DNA of 64,000 nt from contig JALMLS010000376.1 in assembly GCA_038496445.1 (NCBI GenBank), positions 372,001-436,000 on the forward strand, given 5' to 3'. How positions within the stretch are numbered: the first letter of the stretch is position 1; every line of letters starts with the position of its first letter. Below, one piece after another: positions 1 through 9,972 of this stretch. A model generated the notes under the pieces. The model saw nothing but the letters and a program-made list of their open reading frames with translations, had not been told where the DNA came from and did no database searches. Made by a program: the position numbers and the translations under genes. Origin of the DNA: Trichosphaerium sp. ATCC 40318. Taxonomy: Eukaryota > Protista > Tubulinea.

Positions 1-3000
1 AACAGTAAAACAAAAGCGAAATAAAGAGTTGATTACTTACCAATATTAAACTGAACCTTTTGTTTAGGGTTCATACCACGCCAATATAGGATAACATGGC
101 GTCCTTTCATCTCCCATAGATCAAAGACTTCTTGTTTAACAAGCTCTTTAAGCTTTTCAGTGCGTACTTCTAGACCACCAGGTACGCCAATGACAGCCAT
201 AGTCATAGGTAAATCACAATCAGTGACGTTTTCTACCGTAGTTCTAAGCTCAGCGCCTTCGCCTTCTGTTATCGTATCGGCGCTCAAGTTGCACGTAATA
301 CGTGTCGCGCACTCCTCGACTTCGTCTGGGCGAATGGTGTGATAGGAGACGTCGCACTAGTACAAGATAAGTCAAATGTTGACGTGAAATATCAAAAGGT
401 GAAAGAAATGCGTACAGAGTAAGGGATAGCGTTGGCGTATCCTGAAACCTCCATCTTTATAGTGTGTTCACCTGGAGTTAACACATCGTGGAACGAAGGT
501 AAGGTGTAGCTTTCTCCACCTGCTGATTTGAATGATTGTTGAGAATGACGCTTGCCATCGACGAACTGTAAAGATATTAGCGATGGAGCTTAAAGTATAC
601 AATCAAAAGGTACGTACCAATGTGACAGTTGGGCCGCTGCCAGATTTAACTACAGGGGCGCTACTGGCTTCGAATTGAGTCATGATAGCTTTCAAAACAA
701 GTGTTGTAGCTTGAGAAGTTCCGTATGCGCCAAAGCGACATTTCTTTTGACAGTATTCCAAACCAGCACTAATGTTGGTTGCATACTTAACTGGATCAAT
801 TCTAAATTAAAAACAGTAAGCCACAAGAAAGTCACCAACTGTAAAAGTATTCATACCTTAACCATGCTAGTACACTAAGCGCAGTGGCTTCAACATGTTT
901 GCTAGCAGCACCAGATCTTGTAATGGTAACTTCGCAGTCCCTTACTTGACCATTATCTCTTTGACCAGGTTCTAAAGGGTATAAGTAAGCAACACAATAG
1001 TATTATTTGTTTTGAGGACGTACTCTTCCACTGTTTGACAACAAGCTTTTCTGCAACAACTCTAGCATCGTCAATCTTTCCAACATTGGCAAGAGTCAAA
1101 GCAACAAGTGCGTAGATATAACTACACTTATCAAACTTGACACTCTTGACAATATCATTGATTTCCTTTTGGATCGTAGATCCAGGCAAGCCCCATTCAG
1201 TAAGCGCCCAACAAATGTACGCTAAAAATAGAATATAAGCACACGTGATAATAACAAATCAAGGAAACCAAATAAAAATAACCTACCATTGGCTACATTA
1301 GGTGGAGGATAAGAGAAAGCGTATTTTCCTCTAGACAAATTAAATCGACCTGTGCCGTTACGTCTACCAAGAAGCCATTTCATATTATCATCAACCATTG
1401 ATTTGGAAACAGGAGAAACATCTGCTATCTCTTTGAACATCAAGAGACCAAAAGCCGTCAAGACTTCATGTCCAGGGTTACCACCATACCATTCAAATCC
1501 ACCACTTCTGGATTGATAAGCTGTAAGCTTCTTGTAACCACTCTTTATTTTTTGTTGAGCAGAGCTGATTATGCTTGGAGAACCAGTGCCTGACTTGGCG
1601 TAATACTTAAGAGCTTGAACCATCGGGTACACTGTGGCACCAACTTGCTCAAAGCAACCATATGGCTCTTTTATTAGTCCAGTAAGAGAGCTTGTAAACT
1701 GTCTTCCTGGAGAAATATAAAAAGTGGTCTAAAGAGTATGTTAGGGTACCAAATAGAGAATGTTTATAAGTGCGTACGTTGGTTGAAATAGTGTTTGGTA
1801 CAACTGTTTTTGGAATGCTCACAGTAAACTCTTCAGCCAAGCTTTTCGAAAGGTTTCCAGATGCACCATAAGTTTTTGGGAATCCCTACAAAAACAATTA
1901 ACAAACAAAGAACCAAAGAAACCAAAACGTACGAGTGGAGCAATGCGAACTTTGCGCACAATACTATCTTGGTAACCACCTTCAGCCTTTGCGATGACCT
2001 TAACTTCAGTATTGAGAGGTACATCTTGGACCTTGATTGGTACTATTCTTCTGACACGTGTATCAGCTGGTAAATTAACACCAACATGTTTATTAGTATC
2101 AGAATCAAGTTCAAATCCAGCACCAGCCCATACTTCAATAGAGCCACCACTAATAGGCTCCTCAGTCGCGTTGGTAAGCGTTACTGGTAGAAGAATAGTA
2201 TCGCCAGCGGATACTTCCATAGGAACCTTTGGATCAGCAGAGAATGCTTCAACACACTTGATAAGTTTGTTGGCGGAACCTGTTTAAACAAAACGTGTAA
2301 GAAGATGCACAAAAAACAATAAACAGAAAGATAATCATCGTACCAATAGCACCACCTCTACCACGTCTATCAATGGCATCAGCCATAACCTTAAATCCAG
2401 TGATACTCTCAGAGAGGTTGAAAACAACAGTGGCACGACCATTTGAATCTGTAACTAATCCTGCAGCCCAAAATACAGTCTCAGTAAAATCAGTTCTATC
2501 TTCAGTTGGCAACTTCTTTAGAGCTTTGTGAGCAAATATTCTTACAACATCTGAAACAAGGTTTCTTGATTAGTATACTATCGATCGTACTAAACTTACT
2601 GTTTTGGGGAGCTGTAGGAATAGTGATACCATCCCGTAGCGATAACACCAGTCGCTCATTTTGTTCTTCAGGAATATAACAATCATCACCATATGCTTCA
2701 TCCATGCAGAAGTCCTCGCAGTCATCTTCTTCCAACATTGCAAATTGGGGTGGGGCGGGAGCAAATGAGGGTGGGGCGGCAGCAAGAGGGGCTGGTGGGG
2801 TAGCAGACACTCTCTTCTTCTTGCTGATTTGCCTTCTTCTTCGGGGTTTTGCTACTTTTTTCAGAGAACGCAAACTCTCTCTTTCTATAGCCTTTCCTCC
2901 CTTAGCCATTGAGCGCATTTTTTTCTTAGGTGCTTTCTTGTTCTTTTTACGAGCAAATATGCGACTACAAAACCCTTTAACGATGCAATACAAGAAAGTT

Positions 3001-5602
3001 AAGTAGACGTACGGCTCTGATTTTTCCTCTATCTCTAGTGTCCTAGATTGCAGAGCACTCTTACGGCTGCGACCAAATTTACGAGTTTTGACTCTTGAAA
3101 CTTCACTCCTAATTTGATATGTCTCTTCTTCTGACTCGTCACTATAGTCAAGCGAGCTAGATGAATAGGAACGCAAAAGATTATTTGACACTGGCTTTAA
3201 AGTATTGGTATTCTACATCAACATAAGTCATAATAGCAACAATGAGGAAACTTTCAAACCGTACCCAAGCTGCTTGATCCAAGAACGATGACTTTACAGC
3301 CAATACACGCTCTGCTTTACCTTCATGAGTATTGAGGAAATCACGTACATCAGCTTCCTTTTTAAAGTACACAAACTGACGCCATCCTTGTGTTCCAAGA
3401 AGTAAGTCAGTGGCTAAATCTCCCTTTTCGTCACCATTGAGGTAGACATGAGAGTCAAAAAGTTCTTTGACTTCACATTCGAGGAAGGCCATCTCGTTAA
3501 GTCTTGGGGCTTGCTTACGCTTCTAAAAGGCAGAAAAAGTAAGTATATACAATAGTTATTTTGTTAGCACGTACATCAACCATTTCAAGTACAGCATCAT
3601 CAGTAATTGTAACACCAACAACTGCGTCTGAAACAGGTGCTCCACGTTCATCTGTAGCTTGAAGACGCAAGACAACTTGGTCAGAAGGTGTGTACGACGT
3701 CCTGTCTTGAACAATCTTAATATCTACTGTATGGCTTGGTTTTCTGAAGATAAGACGTTCAGCTACTGGTATACCCTTGTCGTTCAATAAAGTGGCACGA
3801 AGCACACCTACAAAAAATCATCTTAGAGAGACATCTATCAAGCTAGCGTTCAAAAAACTTACCTTCTCCAGAGTATTCGGGTGGAGTGAGTGTAAGTACA
3901 GAAGTTTCTCCAGAAACAATGTTAACCCATGTGGAAGCTACTTGAAGTTCACGTTTGCTGAGTGTTACTCTGTAGCGACCAGATTCTAAAAGCATTCAAC
4001 ATACAAGCCAAAAAAAAAAGAACTTAAGTTCATGACTTACCAGAAGCAGCGACAGTGAGGTCTACACCTTCTCCAGCTTTGAATGAGTTGGTAGAACCTA
4101 CTCCGATAACTCCACCAGTTTCTTTAACACTAGAAGATATTTAACCAACAATCATTTCATTTCTTTACGTACTCGCAGCTCTCTGGGAAAGGAATCAACT
4201 GAGCAATACCAGTAGGCTCAACAACGCGCAGAAAATATTTAGTGTCCTTTGTAGGGGTGAAAGAAGCTTTACCACGACCTTCATGGGCAGAAGCAATATC
4301 ACAAACTAAGCTAAAAGTGCCTTAAAGAAAACAGTTAGCTTTTTTTTTTTCAAAACATCAACTTTTAGTACATACCTGAGGGGACATTGTTTGTGCTAGG
4401 CATTGTTGATGGCGCATCCTTAGATGAACAGCTGAGAATCTCTCCTTTTAAGTCGGCTGGATTTCCATTTGGAAGAGCAGCTTCAATATAAACAGCTGAT
4501 TCTAGACCAGCTACAAAGTGACCTGATTCAGGATAAAAGTCAACGTCCATTTTCTGTAGCAAGATTGGAATTGTCTTGCTCGTTGATTCAACAACACCTC
4601 CATCCGTAACACGAAGTGTGAGGGTGCCGTCCCCAATGTTGATATTTTTAGGGAGTTTAAACGCAACAGTGCATTTTCCATCTTCGTCTAGTTTGTAGTC
4701 TCCTCTATAGCACTCATCTCCATCAATACGGGCGATAGCAGTAACTGGTGCTCCTGCAGGTGCACCTCCTTCTGCTCTGTTGACTTCTAGAGTACACGAA
4801 GCGTTATCGCTTGGACCAAGTCCTTTTTTGATGAATTCTGCTTGTAGTTTCTGTGGCGGTTCATTAGAAACAATAAACGAGCTTGTAGGATGTTAAGAAA
4901 CAAAAAACGTACCAGCTTTGGCGGCTGGAACTCTCTGACCTCAATGAGACGCTCTGCAGGTGCGAATTGGCTATTCAACGTGAGTATACGCTTAGAAATA
5001 GTTAAAGAATTTGTACGTTGCTTCATAACCTATTTTTATCTTGTATTCGCCACTGTTAGCACCGGTAGGAACTTGCCAGGTCATGCCAAATACGCCATCT
5101 TTTGTTTTGCTTGTACACTTGTAAGCAACATCCCCTTTTGGCGTGAGGATTTGAAGCTCTACTACGTTAACGATTTGTTTAGCGCGTAGTGGTGCTTGAG
5201 TATGAGAGTTTAAAGGCACAGCGCGAATATAAACTAAAACCCGTTAAAAGGTTGACAAAGACATTATTAAATGCTCAAAGCTATGTACTTGTCTCTCCTG
5301 GTTTGTATAGTGGTTTATCGGTGGAAATATGAGTTGTATAACGCTCCGTAGGTAAGGCTGGCGTCTGAGATGTCTCACGTATCCAATCGTACTCATTGTC
5401 TGTAAAACTAATGCATATTAAGAAGGAGCCTATTCTTAGTTTAAATATAACTATCATACTTTGGTAATTGTTTATCTAGTTTGCTTAAGATAGAGTTCAT
5501 ATCTTTCTCGGGCGCTTTTGCTGTTGTTGCGCTTGGAGCAGCGCTTGGAGCAGCGCCTTTACCGCCTCCAAACATATTTAGTAGTGCCTTTACTGCGGCC
5601 AT
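1..5602 (-). CDS. Alpha-2-macroglobulin-like thioester protein (bacterial COG2373/MG2-type), multi-exon, 3' end runs off window
   Basis: ATG at 5602 (MAAVKALLNMFGGGKGAAPS...). MG2 motif HISTDKPLYKPGET (~5290-5333), VDFYPESGHFVAG, DLLLGTQGWRQF, RTDFTETVFW...FNLSESITGFKV, thioester motif EPYGCFEQ (~1645-1668), YQSRSGGFEWYG, and A2M receptor-domain-like GVPGGLEVR...VILYWRGM near the left edge; short GT-AG introns join the fragments. Confidence 0.9.
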
Positions 5603-6051
5603 TGTTGCTTTTGTTTGATTTGAACACTTCGTGGTTTTCGGTTCAAGACGCTGACTTAAGTCAGCTAGACTTGTTCTAATGCTCGGTTTTCGTTCGCAAC
5701 TGTTATATTATGTTGGTGGGGAGTAAGAAGACGTGGTTTTGCTGTGTATAGAATTTTGTGGAATCGTTTCAGTTAATCATTGGTTCGTACTTCGGTTCTT
5801 TCGCGTAGCCATTGTTTTTGGTACGTTATTATTGTTTTAAAAGTGATTCGCCAAAACGCGCTACAAAAAACGACAACCGTCTGCGTAGATCCAAGCGTTT
5901 TTACAGTGTTCTTGAGGTAATTCAATTGTCTTTCGTTTGTTTGGTGCTACTAAATCGCTAGTTTTGCTAAACAAGGCTGGTTTCTGTTTAAAGAGCGCAA
6001 GGCCAACAATATAACCCAAATAAAGGAAAATGTACAATTTTATTTTACAAT

Positions 6052-9000
6052 TCACTTGGTAATACCAAACTTGGCAACATCACCAACAAACAGGTGATTT
6101 CTCTTCTTTACGCTAGATATATCCTTACGAGTGCCACTAAGGAAAGCATGTCTTGGAGCAACCTTCATATTGAGCAATATATTAGCAGCAACGTCCGACA
6201 TCTTAACTTTTTTCTTTCCGCCGCTCTACAAAATATGGTAAGTACAAGAAAAATTATTCAATTGAAAAAAAAAGCGCGTACTTGTTTTTGTAGTTTTTTG
6301 AGCTCGATATCAAGATCGTCTGATTGGTATAGGAAGTTATCATACTCTTCTTGTTGTTCATCAGTTTGAGCAGCGCGATCAAGCATGTTTTGCATAGAGT
6401 ATAGCCTGTAACAATCTGGTTTAGAAGCAAGAACCAAAAAAAAAAATTCAGTTTCAGAAACACCAACCTGTATCTGGCTTCGACGTATTGTTTATCATCC
6501 AAAGCAATACTTGCAGCTTGTTGAATAGCAAGAGTAGATACAACACTAACATCAACTTTATCTTCAGCATCCTCTCTATCAGTTGTAGTCTTACGAACAG
6601 ATGACATTGTACGAAGACATTTCATTCCATCAGGTTTTGAGTATTCAATAATGATTTGAAATGGTACTTTTCTCGGTGGCGATTTTTTAGACTCCTATTC
6701 ATAAAGGTCAGTACCTTAAACGAAAGATAAAGTCGTACATCTGATAAAACACTCAACCCATTTTCAGTTACGCCATATTCAAGAGCAATATCATACTCGC
6801 TTGTAACGTTTCCTACTTCTACGATATGTTGTGATTTACCAGTCAAACTATTGCCCTTTCTCCATGCCATGGAAGAATGTGCCAAGAAAGTTACTTTAAC
6901 CTCTGTAGCAACAACAGGGTTGTCAATAATCTCACGCATTTTACGTTGGACTTCCAAAGCGTTTACCATGTTAACCTCGCCTATCACGTGATTAGAATAG
7001 ATGTAACTTTAGATGATTCTGTTTGATTCTGGTGGTACGTACCTGATGTTATATTTGCTGGGACACTTAATATAGATACCCCACAGTCTTGACCTTCGAT
7101 ACCAATAACGCTAATCGTTGTGCCATTTTTCTTTGCATAGTTTCCTACTGTCCTGAAGAATTTCTTGCTCTCTGCAGATGGTTTCTCAGGGTTTGTTATA
7201 GTGCCAAGACCAATGTTTGCAAGTCCGTCTGTGCAAACAATTACTTCAGAATGAGCTTTCTATCTTGCGGTTAGTTAGTATTCTTTTTTCTAAAAAGGCT
7301 GTTGTCGTACTTGAGAAGCTATAGCTGATGCTATTACTAGAGCAGGTCCGAGGGCGGTTTGACCGCCTTCTTCAAGTTCGAATAGTTGCTCAATCAATTT
7401 CTCATGTGACTCTGTTAAAGGTACCAAAGCATCAACATCAAAACTAATAAAGAAGTGAGTAGATAAGCACAGATGATTAAAGTTCGTACGATGTGCCACA
7501 ATCCACAAGCGCTTCGAAATCATTTAATTTATCTCCTGTGACTACTTGTTGTTTTGCTTTTGGGAGTGTGCCGTCACCAATAATGTGAACGTCGCTACAA
7601 GCTTATGTTAAGAAACAGACGTTGTTAAGCGAAGAAAGGCAAAAAAACGAACCTATCAAAAGTGACAACTACTATTTGTTTATCTGGTCTGCTTTTTAGT
7701 GTTTCTTCAAGTTGAACCAATATAGCCGCTTGCATACATTCCATACGTGAAGCAAACTTTAAACAGTGTTAACCGCTTTAATGAAGGGAGATTATTGACT
7801 TACTTTAACATCACGTTTTTGTCCAGGTAGATATTGATCAGCTCTTTCAGTGTTGAACTCTGAAGCGATTTTATCATCTTTTTTCTTTTTCCCCTTTAGC
7901 GAGAACATGTCGAAACCCTTTGGTATCTCCTGTGTTACACACATACTACCGGAGGTATCAAGGACAAATACAATAAGACCTGTTTAAAAATTAGTGACAT
8001 TAAAAGTTAGGTCTTATTGTTACCTTGTTGTTTGTCTTTTTCGCTTACTGTTGGAGGAGCAAGTACGTAATCAACAAAAGGTTGTTTTGGGATCTCTTCA
8101 GGGTCAAGATCGATAACGTTCTAGCATATGTAAACAACTGCAAAATCAAGTGGATAGTATACCTTATGGTTACAGAACTCACAACGCCAACTGGTGCCAT
8201 CATTCTTGATTTTACTCAAAGAAGACTGTAAAAACAATGTTAGTAAGAAAGGATTGAGAACAAACTGCTGCCCGTACCAGGATAGCTGGACAACTCTCAC
8301 ATTGAAAAGGATCTCCAGTTGCAATTTCTGTATCTTTACATAACTCTCCTAAGTTTAGAACCAAAGAGTTTGTTGTACTAACACGTTTCTTTGGCCCTGT
8401 ATTCTCTTTCTCCTTTTTTTCTTTTTTTTGTTCAGTATTTGTTGATACGCTGGCTTTCTTTTGAGGTAGTTTTTTGGTGCCAGTGTAGTTCTTTGCGCCT
8501 ATAATATATGATTAGACAATGTCAGGGTATTATTTATCATTTTTAAGTTACTTACACTTGATTATTTTAATACGATCAGCTGCTTTGTTTATGTTAATAC
8601 TCTTTAAAAGACTGTGATCAAAATCATCAAAATCTTTTGGTCCCAATTCGTTCTCGTTGAATATTTTGGCGTAGCGCCTATAATTGTTTAATTAACGCTA
8701 TGAAAATGTGGTACATTATCAAAAAAAAAAACAATTGGTACCTGCTGTCTGACATTTTAAAATCAAGAGCTGTCAAGAAAGTTTGCCAGTCAAACTCTTC
8801 TTCAGATTCTTGTGGGTTGCTTCCAAACCAACTAGAAACACGTCCAAAGAATCCACCGCTTGTATTCTTTGTTTTTTTCTTTTTAGGTGCTTCTTGGCTC
8901 TTATCTGTAAGACCAGGAACGTATACTTGCTTTCGGTATCTAAACACTTCACTTAACAAAAAAAACATCTGTCAAAAAGCATTTGTTCTACGTACGAGTC

Positions 9001-9972
9001 TTCAATTGTTGGATCGTACTCATCAACAAAGTGATTTTGTACTGCAGGGAAGATAAGAATGTCAAGTGCAAGTATTAGGTCACAAGTAACGTACTGAATT
9101 GTATGGTTATAGCAGATTTACCAACGCCACCATCGCCTATCTCTTTTTAATACAATCCCAACACGAGCCTTCTACTTACCAACAAGAACTATTTTGTAAA
9201 CAATACCATCTCCTCTTCCTACTTCACGCACTACAGTAAAGAAGCTCTCCTCGATATTGATCCGCGTTTTAGCACTTTACCGCAAGTCAGTCTCGCTGTC
9301 AATGAAGAAAGTTGAAAAACTTGCTAGGTACCTTGTTTCTATAAATTTGATACCCCACTCTGATGCAAGGTCTTCGCCTTCAGAATAATCAACTTGTCTT
9401 TGGTCTTCTAAGTCATTCTTATTACCCACCAGAACCTAAAAGTAGGAACGAACATCAGAATAAGGCAAAAACAACTTTCTTTCAACTAACCATTGGAAAC
9501 TCTTCAACGTCCTTTACGCGTAGGATATTTTGAATGTGCTGAGCTGCATAGTCGAAGCTACTGCGCGATGTAATCGAGTATACAATTAAAAAGCCTTGAC
9601 CACTACGTATGTACTGATCGCGCATTGCACTGTATTCTTCTTGTCCTAAAAGCACGTAAGAAACGCTTTTTGTAACCAGTAAAAATGGGAAAGGCAACAA
9701 GAAAGCCAACAAAGTGGCCAGCGCGGTTATATGCGCGTAGGGGAATAACATACCAGCAGTGTCAAGAATATCTAGTAAACAAGTACCGCCGTCTTCGTAA
9801 CGGCTTTTCATGTTATCTGACTGCTCCGCAGCCTTCATAATACCCGTAGCCATTTTTTCTAGGGCGTTTAAGCATTCTTTAATGATTTAATAACAAACGT
9901 ACTCTCTAGGTCTGGAAGCCCTTCCAGAACTTCACAATCTCCATAGTATACGTATTCACTCCCGAAATCCAT
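6052..9972 (-). CDS. cpras1: Circularly permuted Ras + Sec23/24-type Zn finger + VWA domain protein (cpRAS1 type)
   Basis: ATG 9972 ([10 protein letters not shown]). Spliced motif order: G3 LDILDTAG|[11 protein letters not shown] (~9770-9610), G4 VLVGNKNDL (~9435-9410), G5 ETS|AKT (~9270), G1 KIVLVG|[13 protein letters not shown] (~9200-9096), G2 [12 protein letters not shown]|YRKQV (~9040-8925). Then CESC...CEFC Zn finger, VWA MIDAS LDTSGSM (~7945-7965), [20 protein letters not shown]; TGA at 6052. Confidence 0.9.

Follow-up and report, generated by a model that had tools for sequence, protein, structure and literature searches.

Can a thioester macroglobulin work inside the cell? To our knowledge, all studied proteins of this kind, namely the complement factors, the insect thioester-containing proteins (TEPs) and the bacterial periplasmic alpha-2-macroglobulins (A2Ms), work outside the cytosol. 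Animal TEPs such as C3 and A2M are secreted and carry the motif GCGEQ, and bacterial A2Ms are usually periplasmic lipoproteins with CxEQ. The question is raised by a gene of the amoeba Trichosphaerium sp. ATCC 40318. It lies at the left end of a stretch of 64,000 nucleotides (nt), the forward strand of contig JALMLS010000376.1 from position 372,001 to 436,000, which is called the window here. An initial annotation had read positions 1640-5602 as a macroglobulin-like gene apparently lacking a secretion signal, with bacterial-type signatures that suggested horizontal acquisition, intron gain and re-use in the cytosol. The reading that we prefer, with moderate confidence, is that this is an intact nuclear amoeba gene for a thioester macroglobulin of bacterial type, which has no signal peptide, is probably intracellular, and comes from an old bacterial gene shared with other protists.

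The gene, its domains and its bacterial relatives

The DNA of the window is eukaryotic, with a G+C content of about 38%. From position 5602 down to 36 its minus strand, on which all window features described below lie, holds stop-free segments with shifting frames, and GT..AG joins combine them into one consistent model. The macroglobulin-like gene occupies 40..5602, with at least 21 exons and 1498 codons and not a single stop in the spliced model. It runs past the left edge of the window, where exon 21 is followed by a GTAAGT donor leading off the stretch. Thus the span given at first holds the N-terminus up to the thioester, while the gene continues down to position 40 and beyond the edge. 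The 20 introns of the model are 43-65 nt long, begin with GTA (mostly GTACG or GTAAG), end with AG, and have 24-37% G+C. In the alignment with homologues, 12 of the 20 splice junctions are free of gaps; junctions 5, 6 and 17 show small insertions of 3-13 residues, where the true splice site may differ and the argument is unaffected.

What does the gene encode? Pfam was run on the separate exon pieces, and it matched MG2, A2M_BRD (weakly), A2M, TED_complement (9.5e-18) and A2M_recep, an order typical of alpha-2-macroglobulins. The N-terminal macroglobulin (MG) domains, with the MG2 and A2M_BRD matches, lie at 3575..5407 in exons 2-9 (5407-5289, 5233-5017, 4970-4913, 4850-4376, 4320-4173, 4129-4041, 3985-3863 and 3807-3575). 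They are colinear with bacterial homologues from model residue 69, where the first MG domain begins at the motif ERY..STDKPLYKPGET. MG2 is matched on three exon pieces, each time under the whole-protein cut-off because the exons split the domains; full-length family members colinear with the model have MG2 above the cut-off. The family motif DLLLGTQGWRQF at 3373..3408, in exon 10 (3522-3265), closes the N-terminal half and is also present in the bacterial and protist relatives.

Next comes a disordered, bait-like linker at 2600..3212, low in complexity, highly charged and without a Pfam match, which is made of exons 11 (3212-3013) and 12 (2964-2600) and is interrupted by a 48-nt in-frame intron at 3012-2965. 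It holds Ser/acidic stretches, Lys/Arg-rich stretches (RRRR, KKKR), Pro/Ala stretches and acidic-Cys stretches, and its position is that of the bait region in studied macroglobulins. The spacing from GTQGWR to DFTETxxW is 253 residues here versus a median of 180 in the other fetched full-length members, most of them bacterial. A charged low-complexity stretch between these two motifs is common to bacterial and protist members, so it is a family trait. The Lys/Arg clusters in this linker (KKNKKAPKKK, RRRR and KKKR, window 2800-2960) are possible nuclear localisation signals or tetrabasic cleavage sites.

The A2M domain and the next MG/CUB-like region follow at 1933..2550 in exons 13 (2550-2344) and 14 (2279-1933). 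Here PF00207 is matched in two halves of 20.8 and 15.6 bits, divided by intron 13, and the region is gap-free against homologues that carry PF00207. Beyond exon 15 (1885-1778), the thioester domain (TED) spans 618..1728 in exons 16-19 (1728-1287, 1221-1024, 971-857 and 801-618) and gives the TED_complement match. The thioester motif PYGCFEQ, reported as intact at the outset, is indeed encoded without damage at 1665-1645, and its Cys is invariant in all 76 aligned family members. In the window, a degenerate DNA pattern for GCFEQ has a single match, versus 0.02 expected. Besides the thioester Cys, conserved cysteines are nearly absent in the family, and a test of the compartment by cysteines is uninformative. 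The C-terminal MG8 or receptor-binding-type domain lies at 40..565 in exons 20 (565-416) and 21 (356-40). Its A2M_recep match (4e-4) reaches 21.4 bits against a cut-off of 21.7 in a domain that is cut at the window edge, and the alignment with homologues supports the domain. The edge falls about 40 residues short of the end point of the bacterial homologues. No anaphylatoxin or C345C domain was found in the portion of the gene within the window.

To which branch of the superfamily does the protein belong? A search with the TED exon (window:1288-1704:-) against 1.84 billion representative proteins gave 2646 relatives. The best match had 140 bits, an E-value of 5.6e-36 and 50% identity, and P-x-GCFEQ was present in nearly all of the best 150 of the 2646. 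Among solved structures, the best match to the same exon was Anopheles TEP1 with 37 bits; A2ML1, A2M and CD109 were matched too, and the E-values ranged from 2e-8 to 3e-7. At E<0.01 the TED exon had no match among solved structures of the bacterial ECAM type, and the ten exon pieces compared with NCBIfam gave no match either. A search with exon 5 returned only bacterial MG2 fragments, a weak lead. The joined model was then compared with fetched proteins by local BLAST, local alignment and trees. Its best whole-length relatives are bacterial 'MG2 domain' proteins of about 1400 residues, with 38-42% identity over about 1240 residues. The close relatives that bear a name come from Planctomycetota (Phycisphaerae, Brocadiia, Pirellulaceae, Rubripirellula) and Myxococcota (Archangium, Cystobacter), and one close relative is located between flagellin and alanine racemase genes on a 190-kb contig. 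By its sequence, then, the protein is of bacterial type, and its lineage is a third bacterial one, separate from that of E. coli. The suggestion that its signatures look bacterial is borne out both by the 140 bits to the GCFEQ family against 37 bits to the best metazoan TEP and by the identity of the whole model to bacterial proteins.

Might such a gene be a decaying relic or an assembly contaminant without function? Nothing was found to support this idea, which we regard as hardly credible. The 1498 codons in 21 exons are free of stops, the thioester has the Cys that never varies in the family, and homologues with about 40% identity align colinearly with the model. Moreover, the gene has 20 spliceosomal introns and eukaryotic neighbour genes.

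The N-terminus and the translation start

If the gene is intact, is its product exported? The absence of a signal was judged by rough hydropathy, with a 10-residue window in the first 60 residues (KD10), a threshold of 2.2 for full-length members, and a corresponding measure, KD19, for transmembrane segments. Exon 1 (5602-5460, 47 codons and two bases) encodes a hydrophilic N-terminal extension rich in Ala, Gly, Ser and Pro. The claim that it has no hydrophobic core holds for the open reading frame (ORF) from ATG 5602, where the KD10 maximum is 1.45. A KD10 of at least 2.2 is reached by 78% of 280 full-length family members, and the window protein is not among them. No transmembrane segment is predicted anywhere in the model (KD19 maximum 1.33). 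In the bacterial homologues, the alignment that starts at model residue 69 begins 41-57 residues from their own start, after the signal peptide. Many full-length members that do not reach 2.2 have an anti-sigma-like N-terminus instead. One bacterial subgroup (P0031, P0042, P0065, P0110, P0112 and others) has an anti-sigma-factor-like segment (LLEY.FGCH) before the macroglobulin body and no plain signal peptide.

The start at ATG 5602 is favoured by several features. It has A at -3 and G at +4, and an in-frame stop lies upstream at 5710-5708. Scored by the gene's own codon usage, exon 1 has 0.66 bit per codon, against 0.50±0.16 for coding windows and -0.25±0.23 for spacer, and its two other frames have -0.71 and 0.00. 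Intron 1 (5408..5459, 52 nt, GTATGA...TAG, G+C 0.27) matches the other 19 introns in size, ends and G+C, and its codon score of -0.68 bit per codon is intron-like. Upstream of the ATG, the spacer of about 450 nt to the next gene (5603..6054) has only two ATGs on this strand, with peptides of 11 and 3 residues, and no ATG-led hydrophobic leader ORF. An upstream exon supplying a signal peptide had been named as one finding that would undo the proposal, and no such exon was found in the spacer. A candidate was tried and rejected: the spliced ORF from ATG 5812 is not in the frame of exon 1, and its peptide of about 32 residues is basic and not hydrophobic. The upstream ORF from ATG 5812 and the possible 49-nt leader intron GTACGA..CAG (5790-5742), whose form is like that of this genome's introns, are recorded as observations in their own right. 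So is a tandem direct repeat in exon 1 (5530-5560), which encodes AAPSAAPS, is of low complexity and may evolve by slippage. For the best gene model, the evidence supports a start that lacks an export signal.

Then could the protein, or one isoform of it, be secreted from another start? Intron 1 contains an ATG, at 5457, that shares the frame of exon 2 and opens 18 mostly hydrophobic residues (5408-5457) with a KD10 of 2.34. An ATG-led hydrophobic extension of this kind occurs in only one of the 20 introns and is therefore no commonplace accident. A start at 5457 would also put the first MG motif about 40 residues in, much as the bacterial ERY..TDKP motif lies 41-57 residues from its own start. 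Both features count against a cytosolic protein. On the other hand, the stretch has the intron-like codon score given above, though a signal peptide could score low anyway, and exon 1 has a coding-like score and a standard donor, after which comes an intron of 52 nt. With ATGs at 5602, 5575 and 5500 further upstream, 5457 would be the first AUG only in a transcript that begins somewhere from 5499 to 5458 with intron 1 still in place. Nor does any eukaryotic homologue have a leader. A secreted product by this route seems unlikely to us.

Another possibility is that the extension is an organelle presequence, for example a mitochondrial one, so that the protein would be a trap in a compartment like the bacterial periplasm and not in the cytosol. 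Residues 1-31, with three Lys, no Asp or Glu and much Ala, Ser and Gly, speak for this and to that extent against the preferred reading. However, the segment has no Arg, is rich in Gly and Pro, and has a modest helical hydrophobic moment of 0.41; in the homologues, the first MG domain comes right at the start or after an extension that is acidic or rich in Asn. We hold targeting to an organelle to be highly unlikely.

Relatives in other protists and the bait position

Is the lack of a signal peculiar to Trichosphaerium? Cluster look-up named homologues in Gefionella okellyi, Anaeramoeba ignava, Cantina marsupialis, Andalucia godoyi, Flabellula baltica, Mastigella eilhardi and Euplotes crassus; their database entries have automatic names only. 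A further one, P0161, is the nearest eukaryotic relative and lies on an mRNA-like contig of 4479 nt, where its ATG is preceded by an in-frame stop. Not one of the seven named protist homologues and P0161 has a hydrophobic N-terminus, and some protist homologues begin a few residues before the first MG motif. P0161 has a 58-residue hydrophilic extension rich in Asn and Lys, against 54 residues here, like in length and character and unlike in sequence. In Gefionella okellyi (P0019/P0152) the N-terminus MGQKHS fits the N-myristoylation pattern, which would tether the protein to the cytosolic face of a membrane. Since the best-supported start lacks an export signal, as do the relatives in other protists, the protein of Trichosphaerium probably works inside the cell.

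Do these sequences go back to a single transfer? Trees were built with FastTree and with IQ-TREE under LG+G4, a single-matrix model, both of them more liable than a mixture model to group long branches. In these trees the window protein forms a group with P0161 and Flabellula (97 SH-aLRT). A set of 12 sequences that includes these three holds eight known eukaryotic sequences, two unlabelled contig proteins (P0084 and P0049) and two bacterial ones (P0018 and P0009). A single clade of ten eukaryotic sequences, with Andalucia left out, is not rejected and fits like the free tree (p-AU 0.53). By raw identity, each eukaryotic sequence is nearer to slowly evolving bacterial proteins than to other eukaryotes. 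Because the majority of the eukaryotic homologues fall into one cluster, which also takes in two bacterial sequences, the gene seems to have been acquired long ago and in common; one old acquisition shared with other protists is compatible with the trees, not proven by them. Transfer from bacteria followed by intron gain, as first suggested, is an economical reading of the 20 introns and the eukaryotic neighbour genes; it is not special to this gene, and the event would be old and common to several protists. Descent from an old bacterial gene with loss of the signal peptide and gain of introns appears most likely.

There is a further question of concern: what stands at the position of the bait in these relatives? 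In Anaeramoeba ignava (KAJ5074730.1, P0103, named 'polyubiquitin-like'), a signal-less member of the GCFEQ family about 30% identical to the model, the two macroglobulin halves are separated by several ubiquitin-like domains and one near-canonical ubiquitin ending in LRLRGG (residues ~640-1179). The ubiquitin, the A2M domain, the TED and the C-terminal domain lie in one uninterrupted genomic ORF (L002 11716-15873). Because ubiquitin belongs to the cytosol or nucleus, as do the enzymes that cleave behind its diglycine, its presence at the bait position gives a hint of intracellular use. A deubiquitinase that cut P0103 at this site would divide it in two, much as furin does with complement C3. 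The macroglobulin-like gene is immediately followed downstream by genes with RCC1 repeats, some with BTB, both in Anaeramoeba (L002 15996-21726) and on an unrelated metagenome contig (L003 8817-10758), a possible conserved linkage.

The same position bears on the idea that the protein, without a signal peptide, acts outside the cytosol, in phagosomes or in the medium, by an unconventional route or by lysis, and so keeps the ancestral anti-protease role. Every characterised member of the superfamily that we know of works there, and the RRRR and KKKR of the linker are comparable to the tetrabasic chain-processing site of complement C3 and C4. Yet no evidence was seen for any export route, and the linker of the Anaeramoeba homologue holds ubiquitin with an intact LRLRGG, a substrate of cytosolic enzymes. 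This makes action outside the cytosol improbable.

What lies next to the gene? The upstream neighbour (6055..9886) is of the cpRAS-VWA type, with two Ras matches (1.9e-14 and 7.9e-9) and weak ones to zf-Sec23_Sec24 and VWA_2. Its Ras-family motifs stand in permuted order, together with a zinc finger of Sec23/24 type and a VWA domain, and it ends 450 nt before the macroglobulin ATG. A read-through fusion of the two genes was considered and rejected, as the neighbour has its stop at about 6054-6052. A short motif containing LLNM is present in the last exon of the neighbour (AANILLNM, 6160-6200) and at the macroglobulin start (AVKALLNM, 5575-5600), probably by chance. The cpRAS-VWA architecture was described by Elias and Novotny in 2008 (PMC2430557). 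The same paper described the 3933-residue Dictyostelium protein DdiCPRas2, in which cpRAS (2844-3013) lies between macroglobulin-like blocks (2140-2771 and 3158-3933), as well as a second COG2373-like Dictyostelium protein (PMC2430557). From the block lengths we infer that cpRAS is inserted at the bait position of DdiCPRas2. Because the two are fused in one amoebozoan and adjacent in another, a functional link between macroglobulin and cpRAS is suggested.

Before a mechanism is drawn, it should be noticed that several points weigh against the preferred reading. The 5' end of the gene is placed by sequence statistics and homology, and exon 1 has no detectable similarity to any homologue, including the N-terminus of the nearest eukaryotic relative. 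The tetrabasic sites of the linker are of the kind cut in the secretory pathway. In the trees, Andalucia is placed elsewhere, beside P0002, and the branches behind the eukaryotic clade are long and were modelled with a single matrix. Finally, the adjacency to the cpRAS-VWA gene is a single case.

How might the protein work, if it is intracellular? By analogy with studied macroglobulins, it would remain in the cytosol, where its exposed linker may be cut or engaged; a conformational change would then uncover the Cys-Gln thioester, which could bond covalently to a nearby nucleophile on the protease that attacks or on some other target. The product of the neighbouring cpRAS-VWA gene may act together with the macroglobulin. 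Defence against intracellular invaders is a plausible but speculative purpose of such a reaction. A wider scenario, which is tentative and as a whole rather unlikely, is that protists of several supergroups have in common an ancient system of thioester surveillance within the cell, descended from a bacterial macroglobulin. Interchangeable modules would be fitted at the bait position: a disordered charged linker here, ubiquitin in Anaeramoeba and cpRAS in Dictyostelium. To the enzymes of intracellular invaders, such as proteases and deubiquitinases, these modules would act as decoy substrates or as docking sites. Once a module is cut or engaged, the thioester would tag the intruder, with cpRAS-VWA proteins as partners. 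Tagging of this kind would be the cytosolic equivalent of what complement does, and would have arisen independently of animals.

Comparison with known systems

How much of this is already known? The superfamily is, and a bacterial origin of its amoebozoan members has been put forward before: gene transfer from bacteria was proposed for the macroglobulin-like part of the Dictyostelium protein in 2008 (PMC2430557). On protist or planctomycete thioester macroglobulins our literature search found that paper only, and nothing on a signal-less protist branch or on modules at the bait position. If the preferred reading is right, a signal-less protist branch with cytosol-specific modules (ubiquitin, in at least one member) would bring the chemistry of covalent capture into the cell, and a so far unrecognised form of cell-autonomous defence or protein tagging in microbial eukaryotes could be put to the test. 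The gene would also exemplify clearly how a protein of the bacterial periplasm is retargeted once it has been transferred. In addition, it would connect macroglobulin-like proteins with the unexplained cpRAS GTPases for a second time and independently.

Among the known systems, the periplasmic ECAM/YfhM of E. coli and Salmonella is a lipoprotein with CLEQ. It shares with the window protein the nature of a thioester macroglobulin with CxEQ, whereas the window protein matched neither a solved bacterial macroglobulin nor an NCBIfam model. The metazoan thioester proteins (Anopheles TEP1, A2M, A2ML1, CD109, complement C3 and C4) belong to the same superfamily and have the same signature of the TED fold. 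They differ in having GCGEQ and a signal peptide where the amoeba has GCFEQ, and the match to them is 37 bits against 140 for the bacterial-type family. The likeness is closest to the bacterial GCFEQ-type proteins, annotated as 'MG2 domain-containing / A-macroglobulin complement component' (COG2373-like), which have the same domain order, P-x-GCFEQ, GTQGWR and a low-complexity linker before DFTETxxW. In these bacterial proteins a signal peptide, or an anti-sigma-like N-terminus then a membrane segment, takes the place of the hydrophilic 68-residue N-terminus of the amoeba protein, and the amoeba gene has 20 introns and a linker about 70 residues longer. Compared with the Anaeramoeba homologue, where ubiquitin domains replace the linker and the gene has only one short intron, the Trichosphaerium gene keeps a charged linker. 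DdiCPRas2 and the second Dictyostelium protein, compared by their published description only, are likewise amoebozoan, macroglobulin-like, of bacterial type and linked to cpRAS. The difference is one of arrangement: in DdiCPRas2 the cpRAS lies inside the protein, while in Trichosphaerium it is encoded by a separate gene 450 nt upstream.

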